From contig NW_018407155.1 of assembly GCF_002113885.1 (NCBI RefSeq), forward strand, positions 561,097-625,096: DNA of 64,000 bases. Reading direction: 5' to 3'. Under the pieces are notes generated by a model. The model saw only the letters and a program-made list of their open reading frames with translations, ran no database searches and was not told the DNA's origin. The DNA is from Mizuhopecten yessoensis. Lineage: Eukaryota. Shown here in pieces: positions 4,955 to 45,183 of the stretch (its first letter is position 1; each line of letters opens with the position of its first letter). Both the position numbers and the translations under genes were made by a program.

Positions 4955-5001
4955 TTTTAATAATAAATTTATGTGTTATTTTGTCTTTTCAGGTAAGTGT
5001 T
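4955..5001 (+). promoter_or_regulatory. Candidate recursive splice site RS1 (3' splice site fused to 5' splice site)
   Basis: TTTAATAATAAATTTATGTGTTATTTTGTCTTTTCAG|GTAAGTGTT. AG at 4991-4992, GTAAGT at 4993-4998, about 40 nt free of AG upstream, weak TTAAT/TAAT branch candidates at 4957-4964. Confidence 0.7.
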
Positions 5002-5230
5002 TCTAGTGGAGAGATGAGTTTGTGTGGTGATGTCACAGTGCCTTGTGACCTTGGGGGAGGTGACCTTGGCTGGTGACCTCGTGTGACCTTGGGACAACGT
5101 GTGTATATGCTTCTACATATAATGGAGTGACAAAGGGTATAACAAAATAGTTAAATGAGGTGATAAACATTTTACTGTTGTATTACAAATCGTAATATAT
5201 GGAAGCATTGGGACGAAGTTTAATGTTACC

Positions 5231-5304
5231 TTAACTCATTCACCCCTGGAGTTTCATAATGAACTATTCAAACTTTTAAATTGGAAGAGTTCAAAAATGA
5301 GTTA
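5231..5304 (+). mobile_element. 83-bp TTAA hairpin MITE, subfamily A, partly deleted
   Basis: TTAA CTCATTCACCCCTG...TTGGAAGAGTTCAAA. Confidence 0.8.
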
Positions 5305-5337
5305 TATTATATATTTCAACACTACATCTCAAGTTTC

Positions 5338-5766
5338 TTGAAGTACATAGGTTTATTGGTGGAGAATTAGGTAGTATCTTTGGAGAAGTACATGGGTTTA
5401 TTGGTGGAGAAATACGGTAGTATCTTTGGGAGAGGTACATGGGCTTATTGGTGGAGAAATACAGTAATATATTTTGAGAAGTAGATGGGCTTATTGGTGG
5501 AGAAATATGGTAATATCTTTGGAGAAGTACATGGGCTTATTGGTGGAGAAATATGGTAACATATTTTGAGAAGTACATGGGCTTATTGGTGGGGAAATGC
5601 GGTAATATATTTTGAGAAGTACATGGGCTTATTGGTGGAGAAATATGGTAATACATTTTGAGAAGTACATGGGCTTATTGGTGGAGAAATATGGTAATAC
5701 ATTTTGAGAAGTACATGGGCTTATTGGTGGAGAATTATGGTAATATAATATATTTTGAGAAGTACA
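5338..5766. repeat. 46-bp minisatellite, ~9 copies
   Basis: Unit GAGAAGTACATGGGCTTATTGGTGGAGAAATATGGTAATACATTTT. Confidence 0.95.
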
Positions 5767-6297
5767 GTTCTTGTCAAGTGAAAAATATCTGGTAGCATTT
5801 AATGAAGGAAAAACAGCTGTGAGAGACAGGATGCAATAGGTCAACAGTGTGATGGAGGGACGATTCTACAATCTGTTCTGTCATTTAAAAATGCTCAGTT
5901 CGTTCCTGCTTTTCTCCATGTCTATGGATTTTAGTCACTAGTCTCTAAGTCTTGCTGGGAGTTTAACACTTCTTTGAAATTGAGCTTCCTATAAAAGGTC
6001 TCCTGTGTGTGTCGGTTGATAGGGTAACCATGGAAACATATTTGACAGTAATGTTAGAATTATGGGATGGCTTATCACGTCATTGGGGATGATATTTACT
6101 AAGACTGACACACAGAGTGGTTGTGATGGCCGGAGAGACATCTCCCTGGGACATTTCCTTGGTAACCATTTCCTAGTTTTGTAAGTAATGGACACTGACA
6201 CACATTGGGCAAACTTTAGGTAAATTTGGTTTAAGTGCTTTGAACCTTCGAAAGTCTGTCACATCTTGTATCCATGTTGTCAGTGACATGGTAAACC

Positions 6298-6640
6298 TTT
6301 GTTGTCGTGGTGACATTGCTGTGGTAGTTTGTTGTTGCCATGGTGACATTGCTGTGGTAGTTTGCTGTTGTCATGGTGACATTGCTGTGGTAGTCTGCTG
6401 TTGCCATGGTGACATTGCTGTGGTAGTCTGCTGTTGTCATGGTGACATTGCTATGGTGCTGTTGTTGCCATGGTGACATTGCTGTGGTAGTTTGTTGTTG
6501 CCATGGTTACATTGCGGTGGTAGTCTGCTGTTGTTATAATGACATTGCTGTGGTAGTTTGTTGTTGTCATGTTGACATTGCTATGGTAGTTAGTTGTTGT
6601 CATGTTGACAGTGATAGGGTAGATTGTTGTCATAGCAATA
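6298..6640. repeat. 33-bp minisatellite with X-box-like units
   Basis: Unit CATGGTGACATTGCTGTGGTAGTTTGTTGTTGC. It explains the CCCHGDIAVVV pseudo-ORFs. Confidence 0.95.
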
Positions 6641-6842
6641 GTTGTATGGTAGGCTCACAGTTGTGGTGGACCCTTGTTGTCAAAGTGCCAGTGTTATGAT
6701 AAGAAAGTTGGCAATGTAAGCTTTCGGTTGTCAAGGGGACATTGCTATGGTGATACTATTGTATGTTTGTTGTCAGTGATCAAATGGTCAACCCTTGTTG
6801 TCATGTAGTCAATCGTTATATAGCTGTTAACAGTAAAAATCA

Positions 6843-7275
6843 AGAGGCTTGTAACAGCAAAACTGTAGAGGCTTGTAGAGGCTTGTAACAGCAAAACTGT
6901 AGAGGCTTGTAGAGGCTTGTAACAGCAAAACTCTAGAGGCTTGTAGAGGCTTGTAATGGCAAAACTCTAGAGGCTTGTAGAGGCTTGTAATGGCAAAACT
7001 CTAGAGGCTTTCAACAACAAAACTCTAGAGGCTTGTAACAGCTTAACTATAGAGGCTTGTAAACTCTAGAGGCTTTTAATGGCTTGTAAAGGCTAAACTC
7101 TAGAAGCTTGTAATGGCTAAACTATAGAGGCTTGTAATGGCTAAACTCTAGAGGCTTGTAACGGCCTAACTCTAGAGGCTTATAGAGGGCTCGTAAAGGC
7201 TTGTGACGTCTAAACTCTAGAGTCTTGTAGAGGCTTGTAACGGCAAAACTCCAGAGATTTGTAACAGCTTAACTC
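6843..7275. repeat. Compound repeat of TAGAGGCTTG and TAACAGCAAAACTC modules
   Basis: Short modules of about 10 and 14 bp reiterated in mixed order. Confidence 0.9.
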
Positions 7276-7872
7276 GGGTTATGGAGGAAACAATTGCCAG
7301 CCTTTGTCAAGGTAGCCTATTCCTGTAACAGAATGAGCCTTACGACACACTTATAATAGATTCCATGTTTGTATGTTCCGTCTGTAATGGCCGGACCATT
7401 AACTCGACAGTTTACACCAGCCAGATGGCAGGTTTAATAGCCATTCCCTTTATTCCTGTTTCTACGATTCATAATTCATACAAACTTTGATGTGCATTGT
7501 TTCATGTTTTTATGCCACTCGTAATTTTCTATTAACTCATATACTGGGTGTATATATATATATATCTCCATGCTTTTTGCCACCATTCATAAATTCACAT
7601 AAGCTTTTGTCCTAATAGAATGTTTCTGTCGGGCTTGTATGAAGGCACTGTTACATTATCATTAAACTTTCATTGGTCTGCGTACATACAATAATGGTGA
7701 TGGACCTATAGCTCGTTAAATTTTGCTAATCTTGTGGACAGAGATGATCGAATAGATCCCTTAAAGAAAGAGAAGTCTCCGACATCTATTGCTAACATAT
7801 CTATGTTCTCTGTAAATGATAAGAAATCATTTTTAACTGTTCTTTGAATTCTCCCCCCCCCCCCCCCCCCCC

Positions 7873-8594
7873 NNNNNNNNNNNNNNNNNNNNNNNNNNNN
7901 NNNNNNNNNNNNNNNNNNNNNNNNNNNNNNNNNNNNNNNNNNNNNNNNNNNNNNNNNNNNNNNNNNNNNNNNNNNNNNNNNNNNNNNNNNNNNNNNNNNN
8001 NNNNNNNNNNNNNNNNNNNNNNNNNNNNNNNNNNNNNNNNNNNNNNNNNNNNNNNNNNNNNNNNNNNNNNNNNNNNNNNNNNNNNNNNNNNNNNNNNNNN
8101 NNNNNNNNNNNNNNNNNNNNNNNNNNNNNNNNNNNNNNNNNNNNNNNNNNNNNNNNNNNNNNNNNNNNNNNNNNNNNNNNNNNNNNNNNNNNNNNNNNNN
8201 NNNNNNNNNNNNNNNNNNNNNNNNNNNNNNNNNNNNNNNNNNNNNNNNNNNNNNNNNNNNNNNNNNNNNNNNNNNNNNNNNNNNNNNNNNNNNNNNNNNN
8301 NNNNNNNNNNNNNNNNNNNNNNNNNNNNNNNNNNNNNNNNNNNNNNNNNNNNNNNNNNNNNNNNNNNNNNNNNNNNNNNNNNNNNNNNNNNNNNNNNNNN
8401 NNNNNNNNNNNNNNNNNNNNNNNNNNNNNNNNNNNNNNNNNNNNNNNNNNNNNNNNNNNNNNNNNNNNNNNNNNNNNNNNNNNNNNNNNNNNNNNNNNNN
8501 NNNNNNNNNNNNNNNNNNNNNNNNNNNNNNNNNNNNNNNNNNNNNNNNNNNNNNNNNNNNNNNNNNNNNNNNNNNNNNNNNNNNNNNNNNNNNN
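7873..8594. other. Assembly gap following a poly-C run
   Basis: Run of N. Confidence 1.
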
Positions 8595-10221
8595 TGGTGA
8601 CATTGCTGTGGTAGTTTGTTGTTGCCATGGTGACATTGCTGTGGTAGTCTGCTGTTGTCATGGTGACATTGCTGTGGTAGTTTGTTGTTGCCATGGTGAC
8701 ATTGCTGTGGTAGTTTGCTGTTGTCATGGTGACATTGCTGTGGTAGTCTGCTGTTGCCATGGTGACATTGCTGTGGTAGTCTGCTGTTGTCATGGTGACA
8801 TTGCTATGGTGCTGTTGTTGCCATGGTGACATTGCTGTGGTAGTTTGTTGTTGCCATGGTTACATTGCGGTGGTAGTCTGCTGTTGTTATAATGACATTG
8901 CTGTGGTAGTTTGTTGTTGTCATGTTGACATTGCTATGGTAGTTAGTTGTTGTCATGTTGACAGTGATAGGGTAGATTGTTGTCATAGCAATAGTTGTAT
9001 GGTAGGCTCACAGTTGTGGTGGACCCTTGTTGTCAAAGTGCCAGTGTTATGATAAGAAAGTTGGCAATGTAAGCTTTCGGTTGTCAAGGGGACATTGCTA
9101 TGGTGATACTATTGTATGTTTGTTGTCAGTGATCAAATGGTCAACCCTTGTTGTCATGTAGTCAATCGTTATATAGCTGTTAACAGTAAAAATCAAGAGG
9201 CTTGTAACAGCAAAACTGTAGAGGCTTGTAGAGGCTTGTAACAGCAAAACTGTAGAGGCTTGTAGAGGCTTGTAACAGCAAAACTCTAGAGGCTTGTAGA
9301 GGCTTGTAATGGCAAAACTCTAGAGGCTTGTAGAGGCTTGTAATGGCAAAACTCTAGAGGCTTTCAACAACAAAACTCTAGAGGCTTGTAACAGCTTAAC
9401 TATAGAGGCTTGTAAACTCTAGAGGCTTTTAATGGCTTGTAAAGGCTAAACTCTAGAAGCTTGTAATGGCTAAACTATAGAGGCTTGTAATGGCTAAACT
9501 CTAGAGGCTTGTAACGGCCTAACTCTAGAGGCTTATAGAGGGCTCGTAAAGGCTTGTGACGTCTAAACTCTAGAGTCTTGTAGAGGCTTGTAACGGCAAA
9601 ACTCCAGAGATTTGTAACAGCTTAACTCGGGTTATGGAGGAAACAATTGCCAGCCTTTGTCAAGGTAGCCTATTCCTGTAACAGAATGAGCCTTACGACA
9701 CACTTATAATAGATTCCATGTTTGTATGTTCCGTCTGTAATGGCCGGACCATTAACTCGACAGTTTACACCAGCCAGATGGCAGGTTTAATAGCCATTCC
9801 CTTTATTCCTGTTTCTACGATTCATAATTCATACAAACTTTGATGTGCATTGTTTCATGTTTTTATGCCACTCGTAATTTTCTATTAACTCATATACTGG
9901 GTGTATATATATATATATCTCCATGCTTTTTGCCACCATTCATAAATTCACATAAGCTTTTGTCCTAATAGAATGTTTCTGTCGGGCTTGTATGAAGGCA
10001 CTGTTACATTATCATTAAACTTTCATTGGTCTGCGTACATACAATAATGGTGATGGACCTATAGCTCGTTAAATTTTGCTAATCTTGTGGACAGAGATGA
10101 TCGAATAGATCCCTTAAAGAAAGAGAAGTCTCCGACATCTATTGCTAACATATCTATGTTCTCTGTAAATGATAAGAAATCATTTTTAACTGTTCTTTGA
10201 ATTCTCCCCCCCCCCCCCCCC
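8595..10221 (+). repeat. Near-identical copy of 6308-7872 (offset 2353 bp), likely a false duplication
   Basis: Same 33-bp array, same compound repeat and same unique sequence, ending in the same poly-C. The two copies flank the gap. Confidence 0.9.
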
Positions 10222-11286
10222 CCCCTCCTCCTTTCACACCTTAAATTCCAGTAGCATAAAATAAGCAAAAGCTGATTATTTTATGTTAAACATTGAGAGA
10301 TGCAAATGTGTTAATATATTATTGTAGTTTTCTGCTCTAACAGCCAAAATTGATTGACCATTGATATTGTTAGATAGTTTGTGTTTCTTCGAAAGGGCAA
10401 CAGTAGAAATTGTTTGTAAAATGTAAAACGAGGACACTTTCGAGACCGTCCCTTTCAGTATTTGTGTCTTTGAGATTGCAGCATTATGCGAAAAGAACCA
10501 AAACAACATTGAAATGTAATTTGTTATATAAATAATTCACAGCTGGATGACTTCAGCTGTTAATAGTATGCATGTGAAACCCAATGAACCAAATCAAACC
10601 ATCTTAGAGACAGAAAAACGGTCAAATGACTGCACATGAAATGTTAAAATTGCAACAAACGGGGAAACCTATATCAGATGTTAAAGACACAACCGTAGCA
10701 GGTCCATTTGCAAGAGTGTTTTGGTCTGGTGAGTGCCGGTGTATCTCGTTTCACTACCATAACAGTGTTGGGAAGGTATAAAACGGGATAATAACTTGTA
10801 AGTGTTTAGCTGTGCAGCATATTGTTGCACTCTATGGCTCCTTTCGTTGCGTCGTGCCGTGACTGGACGGGGGGACCATCCACTCGTATTGTGGAGAAGT
10901 TTTATACAAAAACCTGTCTGTAATCACTTACGGAAATTTTCTCCAGATGGTTTCCGTTTGTAACTGGTTACATCAGAGAGCAGCCGTAATTACACGATGT
11001 GGAAAACCTTTTCTACTCCACGCTGACGGACGCTTCATTGGTGATGAGCAGTTACGAAGGACAAGATACAAACTCGCCGAAAAAAATAATTCAGTCAAAT
11101 ATTTCTTGCAAAATTTGCAGAATTAGTGTGTATGGGAAGAGTTTATAAGAGTTAATTATTATTCATGATAATTTGATTCAAAGGATTTTTTTTCACTTTT
11201 ATTATCTCGTTAGTGAGACAATATATATGCATAAACATGTTCCTAAATCGTAAACTTTCAAATTCAATTTGCAGAGTAATAGGCTA

Positions 11287-11491
11287 TACAGTCAAGCCTG
11301 TATTAAAGGGACCACCCTCGAGAAATCCAAAAAGGGGTCTCAGAACAAAGGTGGTCTCTTAATACAAGTTCTGTTTACTATTTAATCTTTTACAATGGCC
11401 AACATGTACAATGGCCTCATTACAAAGGTATTGGCCTCATCATGAAGGTGGTCTCTTAGTAGAGGTGGTCACATGACCAGGTTTGACTTTA
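11287..11491. mobile_element. Tc1/mariner-pogo-type MITE, ~200 bp
   Basis: TA-CAGTCAAGCCTG ... CAGGTTTGACTT-TA, with internal GGTGGTCTCTTA subterminal motifs. Confidence 0.7.
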
Positions 11492-11830
11492 TCGTTCTAT
11501 CCCCTACCCTTATCCTACAGTCTAAGACACCAGTCCTGGGTCTTCAAATTCCCTACCGACAGTAGATTCTGCTGGCTGTCGTATCTGGTCTTCTTAAAGA
11601 GGTGGTCACATGGGCAGGTTTGACTGTGTCGTTCTATCCCCTACCCTTATCCTACAGTCTAAGACACCAGTCCTAGGTCTTCAAATTCCCTACCGACAGT
11701 AGATTCTACTGGCTGTCGTACCTGGTCTAAAGCATGTTTGACTATCATTCTACCCCTTACCCTTACCATACAGGGGCCATGCGTCTTCAAATTCCCTACC
11801 ATAGGCTCTTCTGGCTGTCATACCTGGTTT
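11461..11830. repeat. ~137-bp tandem triplication that includes the MITE right end
   Basis: AGAGGTGGTCACATG..CAGGTTTGACT..CCCTACCCTTATCCTACAG at 11461 and 11598, with a degenerate third unit. Confidence 0.85.
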
Positions 11831-12507
11831 TGGGTTTCCCAACTGGTGTGTATAAGAGAGAGATTGGTGTCCGTGTTATCACAGAGTGAAGGATTATTGA
11901 GTATACTACTTAATGGGCTACAGTAAAACACTGTCCTGTCACTCACACAGTCATGATTAGGGGAAGTAGACATGTGCAGAGTATGATTTAAGGAAGTTTT
12001 GTCACTAGATTTTCTCCAATTCAGCCAAAACATAATTGTTATGTTTCTGCATTCGGCCTTCAAAATCAGAGTAGGTAGTGGATTTTTTTCTTTTTTCGGC
12101 AAAATATTTCTATGCAGTGTTTGTTTGTAATTAGGGGGGGGGAAAAGACAAGAGTTTTCACTAAACTTCAGGTAAAACTTTAAAAGTCCCTGAGTTCCGC
12201 TGGGTTTGTTACAATAATTGTCAACCTGATAGATCCTAGATTATTTCCTGTAAAATTTATCTCTGTAGAAACTAAACCAAGGCTAGGCTACAGGCAATAA
12301 ACAGAGACTCAAGTGTGGTACAAATTAGAATCAAGTCCTATCTCAACGTAGCTACTGTTACCGAAATGTCTGTTTTTTGTTTGGATTCCTCTCGTAATGT
12401 CAACACTTCCGTCATTGTTACACAGGTATGTAGTGTTTCTCCGTAATGTTAGAGTGTTAATCTTCATTATTACAGATTTTGAACTCGGGTTAAGCTTTGT
12501 TCACGCT

Positions 12508-12598
12508 CAAACTCATTCATCCCTGAAGACACATTTGAACTCTTCCAATTCAAACGTTGGAATAGTTCATTATGAAATTTCAGGGGTGAATGAGTTAA
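12508..12598 (-). mobile_element. 83-bp TTAA hairpin MITE, subfamily A
   Basis: CTCATTCATCCCTGAA ... TTCAGGGGTGAATGAG TTAA. Confidence 0.9.
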
Positions 12599-13049
12599 AG
12601 TTGACTTGATTTATAGGTCACAACTGGGTTGGCTTATTGAAGTGCTTTGTAAATCTGTTATCTCAAAAATCGTACTTATCTTATAATGTTTCCATTGAAA
12701 GATAACAAATTTTATGATGTTTGTTGCAGGTGACAAGGTTGAGATTTTTTACGTTATTTAGTGTAATTTTAAATGCTATTTTTTTCGTAAAACGGGAAAC
12801 GTATTGCTTGGTCACCTATGACCATGCCATGTATTAGTTTAGGCCTTCTGTATCAGTCTGCTTGACTTTATTGGAACTTATCGGAGCTCCCCTGTGTGGA
12901 GGTCACCAGGGTTACAGTCAAGTGGAACTCTCTAGTGTGAAGATCACAGAAGCTATGTCTGGTATGTGTCTGACCACCCTAATTGTAGATATCTAGAGGA
13001 TAAATAGCTGGTCCTGTCAGTGTGATATCAAATAATATGATGTCTTTTG

Positions 13050-13570
13050 GAGGGAATGAGGGGGTCGAGAGGAGGGGGAGGTGAGCGGGGGGGGGGGGGG
13101 GGGGGGGGGNNNNNNNNNNNNNNNNNNNNNNNNNNNNNNNNNNNNNNNNNNNNNNNNNNNNNNNNNNNNNNNNNNNNNNNNNNNNNNNNNNNNNNNNNNN
13201 NNNNNNNNNNNNNNNNNNNNNNNNNNNNNNNNNNNNNNNNNNNNNNNNNNNNNNNNNNNNNNNNNNNNNNNNNNNNNNNNNNNNNNNNNNNNNNNNNNNN
13301 NNNNNNNNNNNNNNNNNNNNNNNNNNNNNNNNNNNNNNNNNNNNNNNNNNNNNNNNNNNNNNNNNNNNNNNNNNNNNNNNNNNNNNNNNNNNNNNNNNNN
13401 NNNNNNNNNNNNNNNNNNNNNNNNNNNNNNNNNNNNNNNNNNNNNNNNNNNNNNNNAGGGGCGGCGAGGAGGGGGAGGTGAGAGGAGGGGGCGGCGAGGA
13501 GGCCGGGGCGGTGAGAGGGTCGGCAAGGAGGGGCAGGTGAGGAGGGGGACATGGAAGAGAAAAGGGGAAG
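13050..13570 (+). other. G-rich purine tract with poly-G, interrupted by an assembly gap at 13110-13456
   Basis: GGAGGGGG / GGGGCGGCGAGG runs on both sides of the N block. Confidence 0.9.
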
Positions 13571-14045
13571 GCATCAGGTCAAGGTACATGTCGATTAGTC
13601 TTTCCCAACACCATTATTGATTAATCTCAGTGATTGTTTTCTACAGTGTATACATTTTCTTTGGGTTAATTCTTATACCTGATTCTGAAGATTTGGTAGA
13701 AAAACATGTTAAAAAAGACCTTTGAATAAAAACCTAAGAGGCTCCTCAATATTTGTTTAAACAAATCTTCTTTCCATTCTTCACAAAAAGAAACTGGTTG
13801 AAATGAAGATGGAAAAGTGAGAAGGGACATTACACTGGCCTGTACATTCCGGTACTTGCAGTCAAAAACATATTTTAAGATATTGCAAAATTACTCCAGT
13901 CTATCATAATAATAAAGAACAGAAATATGGTCAACCTGCTATAGAGAATATGTCTCTATTAAGAGACCACTTTTAAAATTCCCTTTGCATTTATAGTCAT
14001 TGAAAACACATCTGTTAAAAGATAACCTGTGTTAAAAGACCACTT

Positions 14046-14136
14046 TTAACTCATTCACCCCTGAAATTTCATAATGGACTATTGCAACCTTTGAATCGGA
14101 AGAGTTCAAATGTATTTTCAGGGGTGAATGAGTTAA
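14046..14136 (+). mobile_element. 83-bp TTAA hairpin MITE, subfamily A, complete
   Basis: TTAA on both sides and 16-bp TIRs CTCATTCACCCCTGAA. Confidence 0.95.
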
Positions 14137-14272
14137 ATCCATATTGTTGTTATTTTCTACACCTTCATTAAGAGATTACTGTGTTATGAGACCACTTTTA
14201 AAATCCCTGATAGCAGGTATTTTCATGGTGGAGATCTTCTGCAATATTAAAAATGATATTAAAAGATTTGAC

Positions 14273-19777: not shown

Positions 19778-21455
19778 AGTTTTTTAGGCCCCTGGGACCC
19801 CATGACCCTCCAGGATTACCCCTGTTCGAGATATTTTTTTAGGGCCCCAGGACCCCATAGCCCATCCATGATTACCCGTGTTCCCTACATGTATTGACAC
19901 AGTTTTTAGGCCCCCATGGCCCCTCCATGATTATACCCCTGTTCCTTACATGTATATATACAGTTTTTAGGCCCCCATGGCCCCTCCATGATTACCCCTG
20001 TTTCCTACATGTATATATACAGTTAGTTTTTAGGCCCCCATGGCCCCTCCAGGATTACCCCCGTTTCCTACATGTATATATACAGTTTTAAGGCCCCAAT
20101 GGCCCTTCCATGATAACCCTGTTTCCTACATGTATATATACAGTTTTTAGGCCCCCATGGCCCCTCCAGGCTTACCCCCGTTCCCTACATGTTTATATAC
20201 AGTTTTAAGGCCACCATGGCCCCTCCATGATAACCCCTGTTCCCTACATGTATATATACAGTTTTTAGGCCCCCATGGCCCCTCCAGGATAACCCCTGTT
20301 CCCTACATGTATATATACAGTTTTTAGGCCCCCATGGACCCTCCAGGATTACCCCCGTTCCCTACATGTTTATATACAGTTTTAAGGCCACCATGGCCCC
20401 TCCAGGATTAACCCTGTTTCCTACATGTATATATACAGTTTTTAGGCCCCCATGGCCCCTCCAGGATTACCCCCGTTCCCTACATGTTTATATACAGTTT
20501 TAAGGCCCCCATGGCCCCTCCATGATAACCCCTGTTCCCTACATGTATATATACAGCTTTTAGTGCCCCATGGCCCCTCCAAGATACAGTTTTTAGGGCA
20601 GAAGACCCTATTGCCCCTCTAGGAATACCCCTGTTCCCTACATGTAAGAGATATAGTTTTAAGGGCCCCAGGACCTCATGGTCCCTCTATGATTACCCCT
20701 GTTCCCTACATGCTACAGATACGGTTTTTAGGGCAGAAGACCTTTTTTCCCCTCTAGGAATACCCCTGTTTCCTTCATGTTAGAGATATAGTTTTAAGGG
20801 CCCCAGGACATCATGGCCCCTCTAAGATTACCCCTGTTCCCTACATGCTACAGATACAGTTTTTAGGGCAGAAGACCCTATTGCCCCTCTAGGAATACCC
20901 CTGTTTCCTTCATGTTAGAGATATAGTTTTAAGGGCCCCGGGACCACATGGCCCCTCTAGGATTACCCCTGTTCCCTACATGCTACAGATACTGTTTTTA
21001 GGGCCCCAGGACCCCATGACCCCTCTAAGATTTCCCCTGTTCCCTACATGCTACAGATACAGTTTTTAGGGCAGAAGACCCTATTGCCCCTCTAGGAATA
21101 CCCCTGTTCCCTACATGTTAGAGATATAGTTTTAAGGGCCCCAGGACCCATGGCCCTCTAGGATTACCCCTGTTCCCTACATGCTACATATACTCTAGGA
21201 TCCCAATGGCCCTCTAGGATTACCTCTGTTCCCTACATGCTACAGATACTCTAGGATCCCATGGCCCCTCTAGGATTACCCCTGTTCCCTACATGCTACA
21301 GATACTCTAGGATCCCATGCCCCCTCTAGGATTACCCCTGTTCCCTACATGCTACAGCTACTCTAGGATCCCATGGCCCCTCTAGGATAACCCCTGTTCC
21401 CTACATGCTACAGATACTCTAGGATCCCATGGCCCCTAGCTACATGTAAGAGATA
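19778..21455. repeat. Layered minisatellite with zones of 59 bp, a 135-bp dimer and 56 bp
   Basis: Shared core GGCCCCTCYAGGATTACCCCTGTTCCCTACATG with zone-specific spacers. Confidence 0.95.
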
Positions 21456-21485
21456 CTGTAGCTATCTGTTGCTTGCTACACTGTA

Positions 21486-21523
21486 TGCTAACTGTTTGCT
21501 CTGTTGTGTTGTAGGTAAGTGTT
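21486..21523 (+). promoter_or_regulatory. Candidate recursive splice site RS2
   Basis: TGCTAAC branch site at 21486-21492 (branch A 23 nt upstream of the junction), T/G-rich tract, TAG|GTAAGTGTT with AG at 21513-21514. Confidence 0.75.
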
Positions 21524-22493
21524 CCAGTGTCTGATCGCCACACAGCAGTGAGATACCAGTCGGCTATATTGACTGGGAGAGTAAGAGAGAGAGCACTAGG
21601 CTACAAGGCTTCACAGCCAACCATAACAAAGTGGCAGGCAGGACCAGTGTAGGACCCGCGTCTCCACGATGTTGTTGTGAACAAAAATCGGTGGAGAAAT
21701 GTTAAAAAAATGTGCTTTGATGGTTATGTGTGACCTTGGAATTATAATCTTCCTCAAATAATGGGATTTAATGGCTGTTTATACACACAACTGGTGATCG
21801 GTGGGGTCCTGGGGATATTAGCCTTGGTACACTGTGAAGGTAAGACCGGTGTAGCGGAGGGCACTAATGTTATGTGTACAGGGTATCAGCATGCTGGTGT
21901 CAGCCCTGGGATATTGAAAATATCAGCTAGTTGTTGTATTGGGATTTTCGAGTCTCTATTTGTAATGTTTGAAATATCGTAAATATTGATAAGGATATAT
22001 AGAACAGGGATGTTGAGGGGTGGGGTGGGGATGTTGGGGGGTGGGGCGGCGATGCAGCAGAGAGATCGTAAATATTGGTAGGATTATTGGGGGAGAGAGG
22101 CAGAGGGGTCAATATCTTGAGTATATATTGTTGTAAGGATATAGAACCAAGTGTTGGAGTCAGGGATGTTTTGGGAGGGGGGCAGCTGAGTCAAAAAGAT
22201 CGTTAATATTGGTAAGGATATAGGGATCAACTTGGAATATTGAAACGTGTAATAATATTATATCATTGGGTATTGTGTATACTTTATTGATGAACAATTC
22301 AGTTATCGAGACACAATTGGGTCATCAATGTTGAGAAATTGGTTCATCAATCAGTGTACAGGTCAACGGAACTAGTCCATGTGATATTGTATTGGTAATA
22401 ATAGATCTCTAGAGAAGACGTTTGAATAATGGTAAGGGTAGGTCTCTATGGACTCTGTCAGTGATAATGAATATTTATACTACACAGAGGGAG

Positions 22494-33828: not shown

Positions 33829-35452
33829 CACAGCATCAGTGGGCATCAGAGACTGTACTCTACAACATCAGTGGGCATCAGAGACTGTACTCTACAGCAT
33901 CAGTGGGCATCAGGGACTGTACCCTACAGCATCAGTGGACATCAGAGACTGTACTCTACAGCATCAGTGGACATCAGAGACTGTACTCTACAGCATCAGT
34001 GGGCCTCAGAGACTGTACTCTACAGCATCAGTGTGCATCAGAGACTACTCTACAGCATCAGTGGGCATCAGAGACTATACTCTACAGCATCAGTGGGCAT
34101 CAGAGACTGTACTCTACAGAATCAGTGGGCATCAGAGACTGTACACTACAGCATCAGTGGGCATCAGAGACTGTACTCTACAGCATCAGAGGGCATCAGA
34201 GACTGTACTCTACAGCATCAGGGGGCATCAGAGACTACCCTACAGCATCAGTGGGCATCAGAGACTGTCTCTACAGCATCAGTGGGCATCAGAGACTCTA
34301 CTCTACAGCATCAGTGGGCATCAGAGCCTGTACTCTACAGCATCAGTGGGCATCAGAGGCTACTCTACAGCATCAGTGGGCATCAGAGACGTTACTCTAC
34401 AGCATCAGTGGGCATCAGAGACTATCCTCTACAGCATCAGTGGGCATCAGAGACTCTACTCTATAGCATCAGTGGGCATCAGAGACTGTACTCCACAGCA
34501 TCCGTGGGCATCAGAGACTGTACCCTACAGCATCAGTGGCCATCAGAGACTGTACTCTACAGCATCAGTGGGCATCCGAGACTGTACCCTACAGCATCAG
34601 TGGACATCAGAGACTGTCCTCTACAGCATCAGTGGGCATCAGAGACTGGACTCTACAAAATCAGTGGGCATCAGAGACTGTACACTACAGCATCAGTGGG
34701 CATCAGAGACTGTCTCTACAGCATCAGTGGGCATCAGAGACTCTACTCTACAGCATCAGTGGGCATCAGAGCCTGTACTCTACAGAATCAGTGGGCATCA
34801 GAGCCTGTACACTACAGCATCAGTGGGCATCAGAGACTGTCCCCTACAGCATCAGTGGACATCAGAGACTACTCTACAGCATCAGTGGGCATCAGAGCCT
34901 GTACTCTACAGCATCAGTGGGCATCAGAGACTATCCTCTACAGCATCAGTGGGCATCAGAGACTGTACTCCACAGCATCCGTGGGCATCAGAGACTGTAC
35001 CCTACAGCATCAGTGGCCATCAGAGACTGTACTCTACAGCATCAGTCGGCATCAGAGACTGTACTCTACAGCATCAGCGGGCATCAGAGACTGTACTCTA
35101 CAGCATCAGCGGGCATCAGAGACTGTACTCTACAGCATCCGTGGGCATCAGAGACTACTCTACAGCATCAGGGGGCATCAGAGACTACCCTACAGCATCA
35201 GTGGGCATCAGAGACTACCCTACAGCATCAGTGGGCATCAGAGACTGTCTCTACAGCATCAGTGGGCATCAGAGACTCTACTCTACAGCATCAGTGGGCA
35301 TCAGAGACGTTACTCTACAGCATCAGTGGGCATCAGAGACTATCCTCTACAGCATCAGTGGGCATCAGAGACTGAACTCTACAGCATCAGGGGGCATCAG
35401 AGACTACTCTACAGCATCAGTGGGCATCAGAGACTGTACTCTACAGCATCAG
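33829..35452. repeat. 32-bp minisatellite with 29/30-bp variants, ~51 copies
   Basis: Unit TACAGCATCAGTGGGCATCAGAGACTGTACTC. It is the source of the 551 and 563 aa pseudo-ORFs. Confidence 0.97.
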
Positions 35453-36921
35453 TACTGCTCAGCCTCCCACATTCCTGTAGCATTGAGTCAGTAGATCTGG
35501 GCATTGACTAGATATGATGATGTGCCAGATAAAGAGGATCATAAATTATATAGGGGGGGGCCCTATCTATTGCCTGTGTGAATAACTTAATATCATAATT
35601 TGATCTACGGCCCCTTAATGGTCTGAACTGTTCATTAAATGTTGACCCCCCCTCCATGCACACACCAATTACTACACACAGAATCGGCTGGCTGCAGACA
35701 TCACGTCTACTGTGATTCACTTACTCCCTAAATCATTGTGATACCATGCAGTTTGGACATCCCGTTAGAGTTCCTAACATCCCGTTAGAGTTCCTAACAT
35801 AGATGTTTCCTGCACCAGCATTTCACCATGAAAAAGATAAACAATTATCATGTCCAAGACAACAACAGTTCAAAAAAAAAATTAAAAAATTTCGGCTTCA
35901 TCTGAAAAATGAAATTAGAAATGACAATATCTTAGGAAGATAAGGCTGTAAATTTGCAAAATAGTTAAAGAGACGCAAACCAAACCTCTCATTAGTAAAC
36001 TTCAATAGATATTGATCTTCTTCCTCTTTAAGGTCTGTTACACAGACCTATTACCAGTTGAAAAAAGCCCCTCTGAATTCCACCAACTTGTTGAATATTT
36101 TTGGGTATGCAAATAATTCTATAAAGTCTGGAAAAATAAATCAAATAAAGCATTCCATTTCACAATTACAGGAATTTTTTTCTTAGAATTACTGATTTTT
36201 CTTAATTTCCATTCAGTGTCGACTGTTTCCCAGAATGCACTGTTAAATCCTATGTGTTAATCTATGATGGAAGTAGATGATTTATCAGAATTACGATGAA
36301 AACGAGAAAGGTATCATGCCCTTAAAATCTGTTCATTGTAAAAGTCCTTAAAAGGTGACGTGACCTTAAATTCTATTTACTGCAGAAAATTCACAGAAAT
36401 TAATGAAATTTGTGTGTGAAATATTGGTATGAACCGAGTACCTGTCCTTTAGCGAAAGAAGATTACAGAACGACACGTTAATCTCTACAGCAACTGTTTG
36501 AACGTCTATTACAGTGAGTTTAAGTATTTCCTGACGATTGAAAGCCTGGTAATTTGTGCAGAGTTGTTTTAACACTGGGGGATGGGTATGTCATAGGTAC
36601 ACATCACAGCCCATGTGAGAACACGCGTAATAGATTATAAGTGGGGAGAGAAATCGTGGAATCGCTTCAGAAAGTCGAAAGTGGTGAGGTGTGGTACTAT
36701 TGGGGAAGCTAATTGTTGTGATGGGTAATTAAACCTGCGAGAGTCGTCCATTTTGTAGTGTGATTAGTGAGAATTTCCTTTGCTGTATCAACTAACGTAC
36801 AATAAGTTACAGCAATATTTGGAGCACTCCATATACTGGTGTTATGTACTATATAAACTGTAGTAAGAAAATGCTGTACTGTATCAACTAGTGTCAGTAA
36901 ATTACAGCAATATTTAGAACA

Positions 36922-37175
36922 CCATAATTGCCAACTCTCCCGATTTAGGAGGGAGACTCCCGATTTTGGACCCTTAAATTTGGTAGTTTCAGCCCAGAGA
37001 GTTTTCTAAACTATACTTATATGCTAAGATCTAATGATCTCATCTGAAAGATCAACTCAACATATGTAATTTTAAAGGGTTATTTGTCTCTAGGGGGTAT
37101 ATACAAACATTTTATTTGAGTGTTAATTGTGAACATTTAGAATCCCACCCATGGAAGCTTTAGAAATTTAAAATA
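36922..37175 (-). mobile_element. Inverted copy of the 4444 MITE family
   Basis: CATAATTGCCAACTCTCCCG... followed by internal CATCTGAAAGA and GTCTCTAGGGGGTATAT. Confidence 0.7.
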
Positions 37176-37674
37176 CCCATTAGGATCTCTGGATGAAGAT
37201 ATCATACGAAACAGGCTTAGAAATAATTGATCTCGTTAGTGTGGCGATATTGTCTACCTCCACTGTACTGTCTGAAGAACTACTACACTACTGTTTTAGC
37301 TCTTGTAACATTTATCAGGGAGGCCAATAAACTCGTAATTAAAATGGTGCTTTTACACGACTGGCTTTGGGAGTGTAATACAGACCTAAGGGAAGGTTTT
37401 CGTTACATAATGTACTTTTATGGCTTCAGTTATTTCCGGACGACAGAATAATGAATAAGGGATTAGTAGAATTGGGTTTTCTAGAATGCTTGATTGTTAA
37501 ATTGCCGATCAGTAGCTGTGAATGTTTATGGAGTTTGCGACAGTTTGGTGCAATTTCATGACTATAAAGTTAACTGTATTCATTGTAAAATACCCAAAAT
37601 AGGAACATCACCAGGCAATATTGTGTGGGAGAACAAAAATAAAAAGGTACCTCCTGCCTGTCCATCAAGGTCTC

Positions 37675-37765
37675 TTAACCCTTTCACTACTGTAGACCAT
37701 AATGGACTCATCCAGATCAATGCATGGTAGAGCCTACTAAAGTTACATAGGGGTGAAAGGGTTAT
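37675..37765 (-). mobile_element. 83-bp TTAA hairpin MITE, subfamily C
   Basis: Both TIRs and the left TTAA. Confidence 0.92.
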
Positions 37766-38017
37766 ACCTAAAACACAATACATGTTAGATAATAACAGAT
37801 TGTTGTCATTCAGCAGTATGGTAATTCACAAATAAAAACTGTGTAAATAAGTTTTATTAAGAAAGCGTTCCAGCTCTTTGCTCTTTGCTCTATGCTCCTA
37901 AACTAGTCTAGCGTATTGCAGACCAAATTACACTGGATCCTTCTTCCGAAGAAAGCCGAAGTCTGGTCTATTTGTCTTTGAAACTGTCCACAGCTTCTCT
38001 TAAAAACAACAACATGT

Positions 38018-38450
38018 CAGCTTTCTTTTTCTGTTGAAAGCCGTCATTGTCTATTCCAGTAAGCTGGTTTCTTTGCCTTTTTTTCCTGTTGAAAGCCTCA
38101 TGTTCTCTGTTTGAGTGAGCTGGTTTGTTGCCTTCTTTTTCTGTTAAAAGCCATCAAGTTCTCTGTTTGAGTGAGCTGGCTTGTTGCCTTCTTTTCCTGT
38201 TGAAAGCCATCAAGTTCTCTGTTTAGTGAGCTGCTTTCGTTGATTTCTTTTTCTGTTAAAAGCCATCAAGTTCTCTGTTTGATTGAGCTGGGTTTTTTTT
38301 TCTGTTGAAAGCCATCAAGTTCTCTGTTTGATTGAGCTGGGTTTTTTTTTCTGTTGAAAGCCATCAAGTTCTCTATTCGAGTGAGCTGCTTTGTTCCCTT
38401 CTTTTTTCTGTTGAAAACCATCAAGTTCTCTATCCTAATAAGCTAGTTTC
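38018..38450. repeat. ~50-56-bp degenerate tandem repeat, ~8 copies
   Basis: TTCTGTTGAAAGCCATCAAGTTCTCTGTTTGAGTGAGCTG reiterated. Confidence 0.9.
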
Positions 38451-38947
38451 ATCTTATCCAATGTTGATGTATTCCTGAGCATTACAAGGGGATGCTGTTG
38501 GAGCGCCGCTACAGCGTACCGTTACAGACTACCGTTACAGAGTACCGCTACGACAGGCGCTACGACAGGCGTTACGACAACAGCTTGTTTATTTGTGACA
38601 CTCTCAATATGGTCAGTGCTGATCTGGTTAGGCGGTATGGTTCGTCTGGCCACTTACTTATTCAACTTCAGACAAGCTGTGTACTGTAGTACAGAGAGGG
38701 CCTAGAATTATCCCGTAACACCTGAGGGTCTGTACAGAGCATAAAGATGGCTTAGATTTATGAAGGTACCATGAAAACTGCTTCAATATCAACATAAAAA
38801 AAAGAAAAAAGATGTACTACAAAAGTGCTTGAATTTGGAATAGAGTCCTGAAGAGTGGTTATATATAAAAATCAAATGGTTTAGCATGCTTGAATGTTTG
38901 TTAAAAATCTCTGCATGAACCCAAAGCTCCTTGGCAAAATAATGTTA

Positions 38948-39122
38948 CATGTGCCATCCCCTTATATAGGTGAGAATTTTACCCGTGCAGCTCATAAAAC
39001 AGGTGAGAATTTTACCTGTGCCATCCCCTTATACAGGTGAGAATTTTACCTGTGCAGCTCATTATGCAGGTGAGAATTTTACATGAGCCACCCCTGATAC
39101 AGGTGAGAATTTTACCTGTACC
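38948..39122. repeat. ~34-bp tandem repeat x5
   Basis: TGTGCCATCCCCTTATACAGGTGAGAATTTTACC. Confidence 0.9.
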
Positions 39123-39167
39123 ACAAAGCCTGTCAAAGAAAAAATTATACAACAATCTTCTGGTTAA

Positions 39168-39258
39168 TTAACTCATTCACCCCTGAAATTTTATAATGAA
39201 ATATTCCAACCTTTGAATTGGAAAAGTTCAAATGTGTCTCCAGGGGTGAATGAGTTAA
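39168..39258 (+). mobile_element. 83-bp TTAA hairpin MITE, subfamily A, complete
   Basis: TTAA on both sides and both TIRs. Confidence 0.95.
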
Positions 39259-40046
39259 GAATGATGAAATTAATTTTCAATATTGAAATATTGCAGCAAT
39301 ATACAGAGGGGTCTCGCATTTTAAGTCTTATTTAAAAATATTCTTACTTTCGCGAAAATTGAGGGAATCTTACCATACTTTGCTGTTAATTGTTTTGTTT
39401 AAGATGTCATTAATCAGAGAAGTTGTTGAATGACGGAGCCCTGATGTGGGATTGTGTCATGGTCGCCAGACGCCCTCAGGGGAAGGGTGTAGATGTAATT
39501 CTCGTAACCTGATGGTAACGATTTTCTGGTTCTCACAGAACAAATCATTAAAGAGAAGAACCTGCATCACATATTTGTTAAAGTTTTGATAATTTGTATA
39601 AACTCATGTACAGTTATGTGTGTAATGAAAGATAATGGATATATAATGTCTAACCATGCATCACTATAGATTCCGAACATCAGGATCTCCTCCTAATAGT
39701 TGCACTTCAGTAAAAAGTTAATAAGAATTATCAGGGTACCAGTAGTATCTATAAAGATAAATGTACATTTTAACTGGGAAATTACTTTGACATTAAGAAG
39801 ATTTAGAATGACATATATCTTCCTAAAGAAATAAAATTTACAGATTGAATTTTCAAGATGGGTTGTTTTGTAATCTGTTCAAATGTGTGTGTTTTTTTTA
39901 AATATTCCGAAGTTTTAAGTAAATATGAAGGATTGTTTGGCAAACAGCTGAAAATGCTGAGGAGAAAATTTACTCATACAGTCGTAAATATACCTGCAAA
40001 CGAATTGGTGATGGAAAAAAGTGCCACTGATGTGTGGAGTAAACTA

Positions 40047-40137
40047 TTAACTCATTCATCCCTACATGTCTAAACTGGACTTGCCCAGTCTTTGAATTGG
40101 TAAGGTTCAAATGTGACTTTAGGGGTGAATGGGTTAA
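40047..40137 (+). mobile_element. 83-bp TTAA hairpin MITE, subfamily B, complete
   Basis: TTAA on both sides and both TIRs. Confidence 0.93.
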
Positions 40138-40637
40138 GAAAAGTGCTATCTTTGAATGTGTTGGTTTCATTATTCAGCCTCCGACACTTTTATTGTCCAT
40201 TAGAGAGTTCGGCAGCTTTCAACCAAGCAAAAGTCTAACAGAACTGCATCACAATTAAAAAAGATACATTACAAATAAATTGTTTGAGTGATTTAAAAAG
40301 ATATGCTAGAAATAAAAGCGATAAAGCAAATAAATTGATGCCTTTATCAGCTTTATTATCACCTGTTGAAGGATCCGGGGAGAACAGACGGTATAAAGTC
40401 GTAGCGTTTCAGAAAATATTCCGGTTCAGAAGTAGTAAGTGTCTTGTTAAAATTCCGCCAAGTTTTAATCTGGTTTTATGTTTAAGTCTTGCGTACTCTT
40501 GATTGTGTGGCATAGGACTGATTGACAGGTAAGGGGAGATAATAAGGAATAAGACTATCACGTATTATAAGGTGAATGTAAGATATTTGAAAACTTTTTG
40601 TTTAATACAGAAAAACCTGTATATAAGCCAACCTTCT

Positions 40638-40728
40638 TTAACTCATTCACCCCTGAAGCCACATTTTAACTCTTCAAATTCAAAGGTTGAAATAGTTCAT
40701 TATGAAATTTCAGGGGTGAATGAGTTAA
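40638..40728 (-). mobile_element. 83-bp TTAA hairpin MITE, subfamily A, complete
   Basis: TTAA on both sides and both TIRs. Confidence 0.95.
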
Positions 40729-40825
40729 GATACCACTGTAAGTATTCCTTGTCTTGGTGAGTTTTGTGTGAATTGAGCCTGCATTTACAGTGTTACAGTT
40801 CACCTGCAGTAAAAGACCAACTGTA

Positions 40826-41320
40826 AGGGAAATATGATTGTTTGAGGGAAATATGATTGTGTCGGAGAAGTATGACAGTGTGAAGGAAATGAGGGAAATA
40901 AAAAAATGAGGAAAATATGATTGTTTGAGGGAAATAAGATTGTGTGAGGAAAATATGATTGTTTGAAGGAAATAAGATTGTGTGAAAAAATATGATTGTT
41001 TGAGGGAAATAAGATTGTGTGAGGAAAATATGATTGTTTGAGGTAAATAAGATTGTGTGAGGAAAATATAATTGTTTGAGGGAAATAAGATTGTGTGAGT
41101 AAAACATGATTGTTTGAAGGAAATAAGATTGTGTGAAGAAAAATTGATTGTTTGAGGGAAATAAGATTGTGTGAGGAAAAAATGATTATTTGAGGGAAAT
41201 ATGACTGTTTCAGGGATATATAAATGTGAGGGAAATGAGGAAAATATGATTGTGTGAGGGAAATATGGACGTGAGGGGAAATATGAGGATGGAAATATGA
41301 TTGTTAGGAGGGAAATTTAA
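40826..41320. repeat. 19-bp minisatellite organised as a 38-bp dimer
   Basis: GAGGGAAATAAGATTGTGT and GAGGAAAATATGATTGTTT alternate. Confidence 0.93.
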
Positions 41321-42245
41321 TTGCCTGAGTTACAAATTCCCTAAAGGAATTATATGAGCTCTTATTTGATTTTATCTGGATTGATAACTGCGTTATAGTA
41401 CAGTGATGCGCGTGTCCTCCTTCTGTAACCCCGGTACATTTCAATACATCAGTACAGCACGACATAAATCTATTTCCTTAATCAATTTCAAATATTGATT
41501 TTACCTCCATTCCAGATTTCAATGTACTCTTCACCCGATATGATGTCCGTGCAATTAGTTAAGCTTGTACTTGTCAGGTTTCTCACAGCCAAGCGACACG
41601 TGCATCCCAAGTACTAACTGTCATGTCAGATAGGTGTTGATCTGTCACGGATGCCATTACGTTGTAAAAAATGAAAACAAAACACAGAAGATAGATCTTG
41701 CTCATTATTTGGTGATGTACAGATCAAGACCTGCCTTCCTTCAACTTGCATGCCTCGCTGACGTTTTAATTGTCTGGATAGCGGAAAACCTGTTAAGATT
41801 GTTAAGAGGAAACACCTTCAGCAATCCAATAGTTTCTATTGTACATTTGTGGGTCTGATTTTTGTTGTCGTTTGGAATTTCAGAAATTGTGGAGATATGT
41901 CTGCCATGCATGATAGATAGAAAAGTTATGTAGAGGTTCTCAAGACAAAACTATGTGTGTTTTACAAATGTGGCAGTGTTTATATAAATGCAGGGTTCGA
42001 TTCGTGAAAATAACGTCTGTGACTTTATCAAGTGATAGCACCTGATGTCTGAAGGGGATAACAACACGCGATAAGTAACATGTCATGTTCTGCAGAAATT
42101 AATTTTCTACATGATAATTATTAATAAAATTTATTACATTTGTAAAAGCAAATTGTTACGATGTAAGAAATGCTGGAGAAAGTAATCTGGGTTAAGGTTT
42201 GGTCATTTTGATTTTCTTTCAGCATGTTGGTTTTATAATGTTATG

Positions 42246-42580
42246 CTGGGTTAGATTCCCCGATTGGACTTGAAAAGGTATGGGGTCACCTGTCTGACCA
42301 TGTGGGCTTTCTACAAATGCTCAAGTTTCCTCCCAACATTGATTAAGACACACACACACACACACCCCTCTCCATCCTCCCTGCCATACATCCCTGCCAA
42401 CAAGATCGAGTGATTAATATAAGTTGAAATGACATGTTTCATAATCAATCATTAAGACTCAGTTTGTTTTGAACACAAACAGAAATTGAAAACTTATTTG
42501 CGAGCTTAGCCCCAAACTGACGATTCTTATTCTGAATATTGTTTCATAATTGTTGTAAAATAAATAAAGTTTATATATAT
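42246..42580 (+). mobile_element. V-domain-like SINE copy, 5' truncated, with a (CA)n insertion
   Basis: GGTTAGATTCCCCGATTGGACTTGAAAAGGTATGGGGTCACCTG... matches the 15403-15645 element. Confidence 0.75.
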
Positions 42581-42779
42581 GACTCTGTGAATCAGTTCAG
42601 ACTTAGACGATCTTCCATTACAGACAACCTGTGTCATTAGTGATACAGGGTTCCCTCTGACCTTGTGTCGTTGCTGAGGGAAGCTGGTGGATTAGGTGAT
42701 ACTTGTCCATATGTCACTGTCCTGTATCACTGTCAGTGTGGCCACTGACCATGAAATTAACAACTCGTTAGACACCTGA

Positions 42780-43210
42780 TACTGGTCAGCTTGACCACCA
42801 CACTGACCACTACAAACAAGACTAAGCTTTATAGCTTAACCACTAATTCAGCTCATTTCCCCTATGACCTCATTTTCCCCAAAATATTTAGGTAAGACCT
42901 GGACAGAATCACTGAATTAAGATTTTGGTCAGTTTGACTGTTACAGTGACCGGAGTGCACAATCAGCTTTGAAATTTAGCCATTAATTACGCTCATTTCC
43001 TCATTAACCTCATTTTCCCCCCAGATATGGAGGGAAGTCCCCGACAGAATCACTAAATTAAAATTGTATATATATATATGGTTTGCTTGACCTTGACCGC
43101 TACAGTGGCCAGAGGACAAGACTTGGCTTTATAGCTCATTTTATATTTGACCTCAATTTTTCCTGAAGTATTTAAGATAATCCCTGGCAGAATCACTAAA
43201 TTAGGATTAC
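42780..43210. repeat. ~140-150-bp degenerate tandem repeat x3
   Basis: GCTCATTT...ACCTCATTTTCCCC...CAGAATCACTAAATTA occurs three times. Confidence 0.75.
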
Positions 43211-43344
43211 TGGAGTAATGTGATCATATTCATCCTTCATTGAAGATAAGCCTTGTTTAACACAGTTTCCAGACATAGATATTCCATGATGACCTGAAGC
43301 ATGTCTTGGAGAATTTTGTAAATATTTGGGGTTCGTACCATCAT

Positions 43345-43458
43345 ACATGCAGGGTTCATACCATTGTAAATGTAAGGATCATACTGTCATAAATGCAGGG
43401 TTCATACCATTGTAAATGTAAGGATCATACTGTCATAAATGCAGGGTTCATACCGTCG
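43345..43458. repeat. 46-bp tandem repeat x2.5
   Basis: ATGCAGGGTTCATACCATTGTAAATGTAAGGATCATACTGTCATAA. Confidence 0.85.
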
Positions 43459-44537
43459 TTAAGGCCGGGTTTTGTATCGTTAATGCATTTTAATCCTAAG
43501 TTGAAGTTGAAGCTTATTTGAGACTATTCTGAAATGTCTTGTATAAGTTTGAATTCAATGTATAAAAGAATGAATGACCTGCTATTACTGAAACAGTGCG
43601 ACTCGAAAAATTCCAGAAAAGTTTCTGTTCTGTAAACAGTCGCTTGTAATAATTCCTGGGGTTGAGCTTTCTATTCAGATCGAGGATCCCCTCAGAACTG
43701 TAAATATCGTAAAATAAAAATCATTCAGAAGCGTTGTAATGTCCTATAAATTGATAAAATGTGTATTTTGAATGTAAGTGGAGTTTGTGGGTACAGGCAG
43801 TGCAGTTTCGTAAACTTCATTACCTGGATACTCAAGAGGCTGAGACAAAGTAGATTATGATTTTTCATTTCGGAGAAAACCTAGAAAACCTAATTACGAG
43901 AATTGCTGATCTAATTGCACAACTTCAGTAGCGAACGCGGTAAATTAATTACGAACTTCCTTTTCTTTTCACATGCTATTGATATGATAAAGTGTTTAAA
44001 AAAAAAATCTACTCGTGTGCATGATGTGCAGCGTATATTCCTTAATATTTTGATTTTAAAAAAATAAAATGGTGATGCTTGTAATGAAGAATATAGACAT
44101 TTTTGACGTTTGATTGAGGGAAATATTTCTTTTGACAGTTTGTCACTTTTTGTAGTTTGTCCTTTCAGTGGTATGAATGATTCTGAAAACCCCAAAGCAT
44201 CATGGGAACCTCTTACGGAATAGAAATTAATGGCTGCCATGTTGGTTTTGCAGCTTAACTAATCATGAAGTTTAATTTGTTGCCAACATTTAACATCTTT
44301 CATGGAACTACTTGCTTCTAAGCTGTTTTTGATGTGCAAGTCATTTGTAATACATTGGCATAGCTTAGGAAAAATTCATCTGTACCAGCTAACATGGTAT
44401 GGTGTCCATTTAAATCATTGTAATACAATGTCAAATTAAAGTTCTTATAGCGATGAAGCATGAAATACAGCATCACAACAAAAGTTTGAAAGCCATTAGT
44501 GTTCGAAAAGGGTCTAAATAATTGGCCCATGGCATAG

Positions 44538-44730
44538 AGGGATTCCCCAGAGCTATATTTAGAATAGATGGTTTCCAATGTGATTCAGGTAATTCCCTAC
44601 AGCTATATTTAGAATAGATGGCTTCCATTGTGATTCAGGGAATTCCCTACAGCTATATTTAGAATAGATGGCTTCCATTATGATTCAGGGATTTCCCTGC
44701 GGCTATATTTAGAATTTATGGCATTCAGTG
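44538..44730. repeat. ~50-bp tandem repeat x4
   Basis: CCCTACAGCTATATTTAGAATAGATGGCTTCCATTGTGATTCAGG. Confidence 0.9.
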
Positions 44731-44986
44731 TGAACTTTGGAATATTTTACCATTTATATCAGGATGAGGTTTCTTAAATCACATAAAGTCAACTTTATAT
44801 TCACATTGATAGTTTTTCTCATCAATTAATTTTGTATTCTCTCATCCAAAACATTCAATTGCTTATAAGTATTTGTCCATTATATAAAATATATTTACTT
44901 TGAATGGAGTCTCAAAATCTTGCCTGATAAATCAGACAACAGCAGATATTGTTTTAGAATAACAAAAAATATGTACCACACTTAAA

Positions 44987-45077
44987 TTTGCTCATTCATC
45001 CCTGAAGACACATTTGAACTCTTCCAGTTCAAAAGTTTGAAAAGTTCATTATGCAATTTAAGGGGTGAATGAGTTAA
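44987..45077 (-). mobile_element. 83-bp TTAA hairpin MITE, subfamily A
   Basis: Both TIRs. It ends ~40 nt upstream of the RS3 branch site. Confidence 0.9.
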
Positions 45078-45114
45078 GTAGTTCACAATTTTCTGTGTTT
45101 ATTATATTGTAATC

Positions 45115-45152
45115 CTAATATTTTCTTTTCTTTGTCTTTGTAGGTAAGTGTT
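45115..45152 (+). promoter_or_regulatory. Candidate recursive splice site RS3
   Basis: CTAAT branch site at 45115-45119, tract TTTTCTTTTCTTTGTCTTTG, TAG|GTAAGTGTT with AG at 45142-45143. Confidence 0.78.
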
Positions 45153-45183
45153 GATCAAGTGCTGAAGGAGATGGCTGATCTTA

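Follow-up and report, generated by a model that had tools for sequence, protein, structure and literature searches.

Putative ratchet points for stepwise removal of a giant intron in a 64-kb stretch of scallop DNA

Does a long stretch of scallop DNA that appears to be free of exons belong to a giant intron which is removed in several steps? The question is raised by 64,000 nt of contig NW_018407155.1 of Mizuhopecten yessoensis (positions 561,097 to 625,096 of the forward strand; hereafter the window), for which an initial annotation, made from the letters alone, had proposed that three fused splice sites of like orientation act as ratchet points for recursive splicing. We have re-examined the sites and their surroundings, and consider it likely that they are ratchet points of the Drosophila type, serving the stepwise removal of a giant intron. 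The window has 37% GC, and about 27% of it lies under repeats. We found no tRNA and no Rfam match in it, and a splice-site scan, a six-frame listing and Pfam searches on ten frames revealed no credible coding exon in the 64 kb. Its unique sequence has an excess of G over C (skew +0.079, z 10) and of T over A, which is consistent with transcription in one direction.

Three fused splice-site motifs on one strand

The word AGGTAAGT occurs exactly three times in the whole window, beginning at 4991, 21513 and 45142 of the plus strand, and is absent from the minus strand; the GT of sites 1, 2 and 3 is therefore at 4993, 21515 and 45144, respectively, of the plus strand. At every site a branch-like motif and a pyrimidine tract lead to YAG, after which the sequence GTAAGTGTT follows with no spacer, such that a 3' splice site and a consensus 5' splice site are juxtaposed as AG/GT in all three. 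The acceptor half of site 1 (4955-4992) consists of a weak branch-like motif with its A at 4960, a T-rich tract and CAG at 4990-4992, and its predicted regenerated donor occupies 4993-5001. Site 2 has a near-consensus branch A at 21491, a T/G-rich tract and TAG at 21512-21514 (acceptor half 21486-21514), followed by the predicted donor at 21515-21523. Site 3, with branch A 45118 and TAG at 45141-45143 (acceptor half 45113-45143; predicted donor 45144-45152), contains the strongest plus-strand acceptor in the window. The YTRAY branch A thus lies 33, 24 and 26 nt upstream of the respective GT, so that at the level of motifs each site has a pyrimidine tract and a branch point within the 21-36 nt expected of a ratchet point, that of site 1 being weak. 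Pyrimidines make up 15, 14 and 18 of the last 20 nt at sites 1, 2 and 3, and the corresponding AG-free zones extend for 41, 51 and 60 nt. Among 210 YAG/GT sites on both strands, the three rank first to third. They are separated by 16,522 nt (sites 1 and 2) and 23,629 nt (sites 2 and 3), and beyond a common core of 15-22 nt their flanks are unrelated. On recount, the coordinates, branch positions, plus-strand orientation and unrelated flanks given by the initial annotation were all correct, as was its failure to see the 8-mer on the minus strand.

We asked how readily such sites would arise as neutral motifs in AT-rich DNA. The 8-mer alone is unremarkable, about one copy being expected per strand and 2.6 on both strands together, in agreement with the earlier estimate of roughly one chance occurrence; in addition, the window was chosen among hundreds and the thresholds were set post hoc. 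However, a composite rule of YAG/GTAAGT with at least 14 pyrimidines in 20 and no AG for 20 nt gave three matches on the plus strand and none on the minus strand, over the whole window, compared with 0.005-0.03 expected per strand per window in simulations from order-2 and order-4 Markov models trained on the unique sequence of the window. A comparable acceptor context is found at 3% of the AGs in unique sequence, the cube of which is 2.6e-5; with a looser threshold of 10 pyrimidines in 20 the fraction is 13% and the cube 2.4e-3, so the result survives the after-the-fact choice of threshold. Taken together, the composite probability is 1e-3 to 1e-5 or lower. Nor do the sites appear to be repeat-borne: their cores lie outside both tandem and dispersed repeats and their flanks are unrelated, from which we conclude that they are three independent sites. 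A minisatellite of splice donors, or an array of AG/GT carried by a repeat, is likewise rejected, given that the flanks are not copies of a repeat unit. Searches for kin of the site itself contributed little. The 21-nt pattern of site 3 had a single match in metagenomes (L001, 2894-2914), which lies in a bacterial leuC gene of a leucine operon and is attributed to chance, and a loose pattern allowing three mismatches was uninformative.

The donor 8-mer is continued by GTT at all three sites. Conceivably, then, these are ordinary donors, each lying behind an unannotated, T-rich non-coding exon with YAG at its end, or remnants left by the duplication of a small element with the sequence GTAAGTGTT(N2-5)AGTG; the probability that GTT would be shared at +7 to +9 by chance is 6e-4, and that some nearby 4-mer (here AGTG) would be shared is about 0.02. 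We regard this explanation as very improbable. The flanks are unrelated and outside repeats, branch motifs and long AG-free zones stand upstream of each donor, and pairing with U1 accounts for most of the extension, since the G and T at +7 and +8 common to all sites complete the U1 helix. The T at +9 may extend pairing with U6, for which the literature we reviewed gave no confirmation; for that T and the nearby AGTG we found no explanation, and chance is possible.

If the sites are ratchet points, each regenerated donor would have to prevail over a weaker one a short distance downstream, and sequences that could play the latter part are present. The candidate cryptic recursive-splicing exons (RS-exons), all on the plus strand, are RS-exon 1 of 67 nt (4993-5059), RS-exon 2 of 66 nt (21515-21580) and RS-exon 3 of 49 nt (45144-45192). 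Their weak donors have the GT at 5060, 21581 and 45193, respectively, with alternatives at 5073, 21548 and 45205. RS-exon 1 has 50% GC compared with 19% upstream. It should be noted that weak donors of this kind are frequent by chance. The predicted U1 helix of the regenerated donors spans 10-11 bases at -12.5 to -14 kcal/mol, and the candidate cryptic donors at +33 to +80 pair at -3 to -6.7 kcal/mol. By scoring matrices, too, the donor of each site is stronger than the candidate cryptic donor downstream. This is the order needed by the donor-competition model (PMC8605326).

Sequencing runs around site 3

A sequence search with 41400-50900 led to a single species label, with runs X1-X4, which are presumed to be RNA and share 40-56% of the words of that segment. 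We aligned X1, together with three raw RNA-seq runs (X11, X14 and X21, 18-26% of each being examined), to 42144-48143, that is, to the surroundings of site 3. The contigs of X1 show neither strand nor true level, and holes in their coverage carry no weight.

One of these contigs, contig 5 (length 888, depth 14.3), aligns to 45142-46013 of the plus strand from its letter 17, starting at the A of the acceptor AG of site 3; its preceding 16 letters match nothing there. The other listed X1 contigs on unique sequence align end to end, with the exception of one that lacks a mobile element. The chance that a foreign contig end comes to lie no more than 2 nt from the predicted join is about 0.001 per such end. 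The alignment begins 2 nt earlier than the join itself, as is explained by the fact that exons often end in AG. Contig 5 is a probable recursive intermediate in which an upstream exon has been joined to site 3; the letters without a match would be the end of that exon. A step in depth is seen at the same position. The four X1 contigs upstream of site 3 have depths of 5.3, 3.3, 6.2 and 4.1 and cover 45% of the sequence, and the three downstream have depths of 14.3, 20.3 and 10.3 and cover 93%, at equal GC; for this comparison of four with three contigs the one-sided rank p is about 0.03. The share of words in X1, 0.56 over 41400-50900, is consistent with coverage continuing past 48 kb. The initial annotation had proposed a search for junction reads and a saw-tooth profile at all three sites; at site 3 we now have one foreign-ended contig and a depth step at 45144, both in X1 (presumed RNA), which together look as would be expected if a recursive intermediate were present and coverage reset there in saw-tooth fashion, and are suggestive of both.

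Three other readings of these data were considered. A chance origin of the motifs would require that the contig end reflect an allele difference or a mis-assembly and that the depth step be noise. The species is polymorphic, including for presence or absence of mobile elements, and the step depends on four contigs against three; but a foreign end so near the predicted join is expected at only about 0.001, and two coincidences would be needed, so that we hold this account to be improbable. The proposal that the sites are plain donors fares worse, in that X1 keeps the downstream side of site 3 and replaces the upstream side, which is the opposite geometry. Finally, site 3 could be an acceptor for trans-splicing, with the 18 letters ending in AG as a spliced leader. 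With 16 letters plus AG, the foreign part is as short as leader exons are, but such an acceptor needs no GTAAGT after it, no open reading frame (ORF) follows, and among the titles searched we found no paper on leader trans-splicing for the scallop host. We give this idea hardly any credence.

Somewhat more weight, although it is still unlikely, must be given to the view that the sites are true acceptors of expressed exons that begin with GTAAGT (alternative RS-exons, last exons or exons of a long non-coding RNA), the regenerated donor not being the main route. A long terminal exon would also give a junction and a depth step at 45144. Past every site, frame 0 stays open for 27-45 codons, the 66-nt RS-exon 2 would keep the frame, and the 70 nt after every site are purine-rich. 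Yet contig 5 runs 870 nt into the intron, past both candidate cryptic donors, and a perfect donor at the opening of three unrelated exons would itself need selection on the donor. The putative peptides have only V-S-V in common and no homologues were found for them. Exact look-up of ten translated frames gave no match; two homologue searches with frames of the window were also blank, which does not exclude longer or shorter kin, and a representative search returned only two unrelated repeat ORFs. Moreover, X11, X14 and X21 had no reads on unique sequence in 42144-48143, and their reads there fell on dispersed repeats only; no mature exon is thus seen near site 3, although these samples may not express the gene.

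The proposed stepwise removal in comparison with known systems

Several observations weigh against the interpretation of the sites as ratchet points. The junction evidence comes from one contig of one run, and that the run is RNA is a guess. Three raw runs were without any transcription of the surveyed stretch. An argument from the assembly graph predicts 21 exon letters on contig 5, and 18 were found, a mismatch that an allele difference or a read end could explain. Lastly, two assembly gaps (7873-8594 and 13110-13456) separate sites 1 and 2, the interval between sites 2 and 3 being gap-free. Either gap may hide an exon or a mis-join between the first two sites. The first is flanked by near-identical copies of 1.6 kb (6266-7872 and 8619-10225); within them 6308-7872 is letter-identical to 8660-10225, and each copy ends in poly-C. 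Probably two overlapping contigs were left unmerged here, a real duplication being less likely, and the distance between sites 1 and 2 may then be about 14.2 kb instead of 16.5 kb. The second gap has the same G-rich low-complexity tract on each side. Every segment bounded by gaps has a positive GC skew; this uniform sign indicates no inversion, and orientation has probably been kept.

No defining feature of ratchet points was found to be missing: the sequence features are all present, and the RNA features at site 3 are suggestive. We propose, from the sequence, that the window lies within an intron of more than 64 kb of a plus-strand gene whose exons are outside it. As the polymerase passes each site, the branch point, tract and AG would serve as an acceptor to which the upstream exon is joined, the site having been defined at first as a cryptic exon. 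Joining would recreate a strong exon-AG/GTAAGTGT donor. This donor would beat the weak cryptic one located 50-80 nt downstream, after which it would be spliced to the next site. In this way a first segment of about 14-16.5 kb would be removed, then one of about 23.6 kb and lastly one of 18 kb or more, and the mature mRNA would keep no trace of the sites. Of the stepwise removal put forward in the initial annotation, the anatomy, strand bias, spacing and site 3 contig all speak in favor; we infer the second splicing step, the role of the cryptic donors, the use of the first two sites, the identity of the foreign letters as an exon end, the host gene, the strand and the existence of one single intron.

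The closest counterparts are the zero-nucleotide ratchet points of Drosophila, as in Ubx, kuz and luna (10.1101/006163, PMC6110457, PMC8605326). There, as here, an acceptor and a consensus donor are fused at AG/GT; several such sites occur per intron, as we propose for the window. Fly branch distances are -21 to -36 and segments average 17,953 +/- 9,039 bp (10.1101/006163), with a median of 16.4 kb; the putative segments in the window are 14-24 kb and its branch points, at -24 to -33, are within the fly range. Weak donors are found 50-80 nt downstream in flies and are present as candidates here, and at the one site examined here contig 5 and the depth step may reflect a junction and a coverage reset. 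In contrast to the fly sites, those in the window are known from motifs plus one contig at site 3, all three donors extend to GTAAGTGTT, and the host (probably a bivalve mollusc) belongs to another phylum. When such a site is weakened in flies, a cryptic exon that breaks the frame is included in the mRNA (PMC8605326).

In vertebrates, which have recursive sites and RS-exons, only nine fully suppressed sites have been definitively noted in mammalian long introns (Sibley et al. 2015, via PMC8605326), and long introns show little enrichment of the motif (PMC2773006). The chemistry and the logic of donor competition are the same, whereas three sites in 40 kb amount to a fly-like density. In insects and sea urchin, introns over 50 kb are enriched in ratchet motifs, at 0.5-2.2 per 100 kb sense compared with 0.0-0.12 antisense (PMC2773006); the corresponding values for the window, obtained with other scoring and for a selected window, are 4.8 and 0. 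The excess on the sense strand is thus shared with that survey, which included no lophotrochozoan and had no RNA evidence for sea urchin. In the papers that we found, RNA data for recursive splicing concern flies, human, mouse and lungfish, and the data for other insects and sea urchin are motif counts only. Our literature search, which left most subscription papers outside, returned no relevant paper on recursive splicing in molluscs, bivalves, cephalopods or planarians.

These sites are therefore probably the first indication of ratchet points for molluscs, in which they were to be expected from the known mechanism and the motif enrichment in insects and sea urchin (PMC2773006). It is possible, if doubtful, that bivalves, and perhaps lophotrochozoans at large, have ladders of ratchet points as dense as those of flies, with an extended donor signature of their own, GTAAGTGTT with AGTG following within 2-5 nt. 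If this were true, recursive splicing would be the ancestral and routine way in which bilaterians remove giant introns, and mammals would represent a reduced case; from the extended signature one could then derive a testable rule for how a regenerated donor beats the donor of a cryptic exon. Were a bivalve ladder confirmed, the third main branch of the bilaterians would be represented as well, and the question of a single ancient origin could be tested. Such sites also matter for the annotation of giant mollusc genes, and with three exact coordinates and the public runs X1-X4 testing is cheap.

Other splice-like sites and repeats in the window

Further fused sites were sought in the window. 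CAG/GTATGT at 12426, with an AG-free zone of 72 nt and a weaker donor, is a candidate that lies between the two gaps. YAG/GTAAGA at 42892 was rejected, as its acceptor scores poorly and in X1 no contig begins there and depth does not change lastingly; it belongs to a local repeat of three copies (42825-43210), one of which bears this TAG/GTAAGA, with no use seen in X1. A site at 40529 has no pyrimidine tract and was discarded. Those at 38970-39103 were set aside as part of a tandem array of 33/34-nt units (38941-39119), in which five units carry YAG/GTGAGA, two of them with a moderate tract, forming a repeat-borne ladder of AG/GT. Two strong lone acceptors of the plus strand, at 49830 and 17980, have no donor motif after them; the latter could open an exon of 120 nt with one open frame, for which there was no Pfam match.

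The window contains three large minisatellites, at 3-1522 (32-nt units), 19781-21439 (56-68 nt) and 33830-35453 (32 nt). The second stops 75 nt upstream of site 2, and the third yields spurious long ORFs. A family of about 90 nt resembling miniature inverted-repeat transposable elements (MITEs) is present in more than 20 places and in both orientations (for example, 12510-12598, 39165-39275 and 44991-45078), and is abundant among RNA-seq reads that originate elsewhere in the genome. One of its copies stops about 40 nt upstream of the branch point of site 3. A MITE-like element of 88 nt with terminal inverted repeats occupies 47771-47858 and is missing from the X1 allele, which makes it a presence/absence polymorphism.

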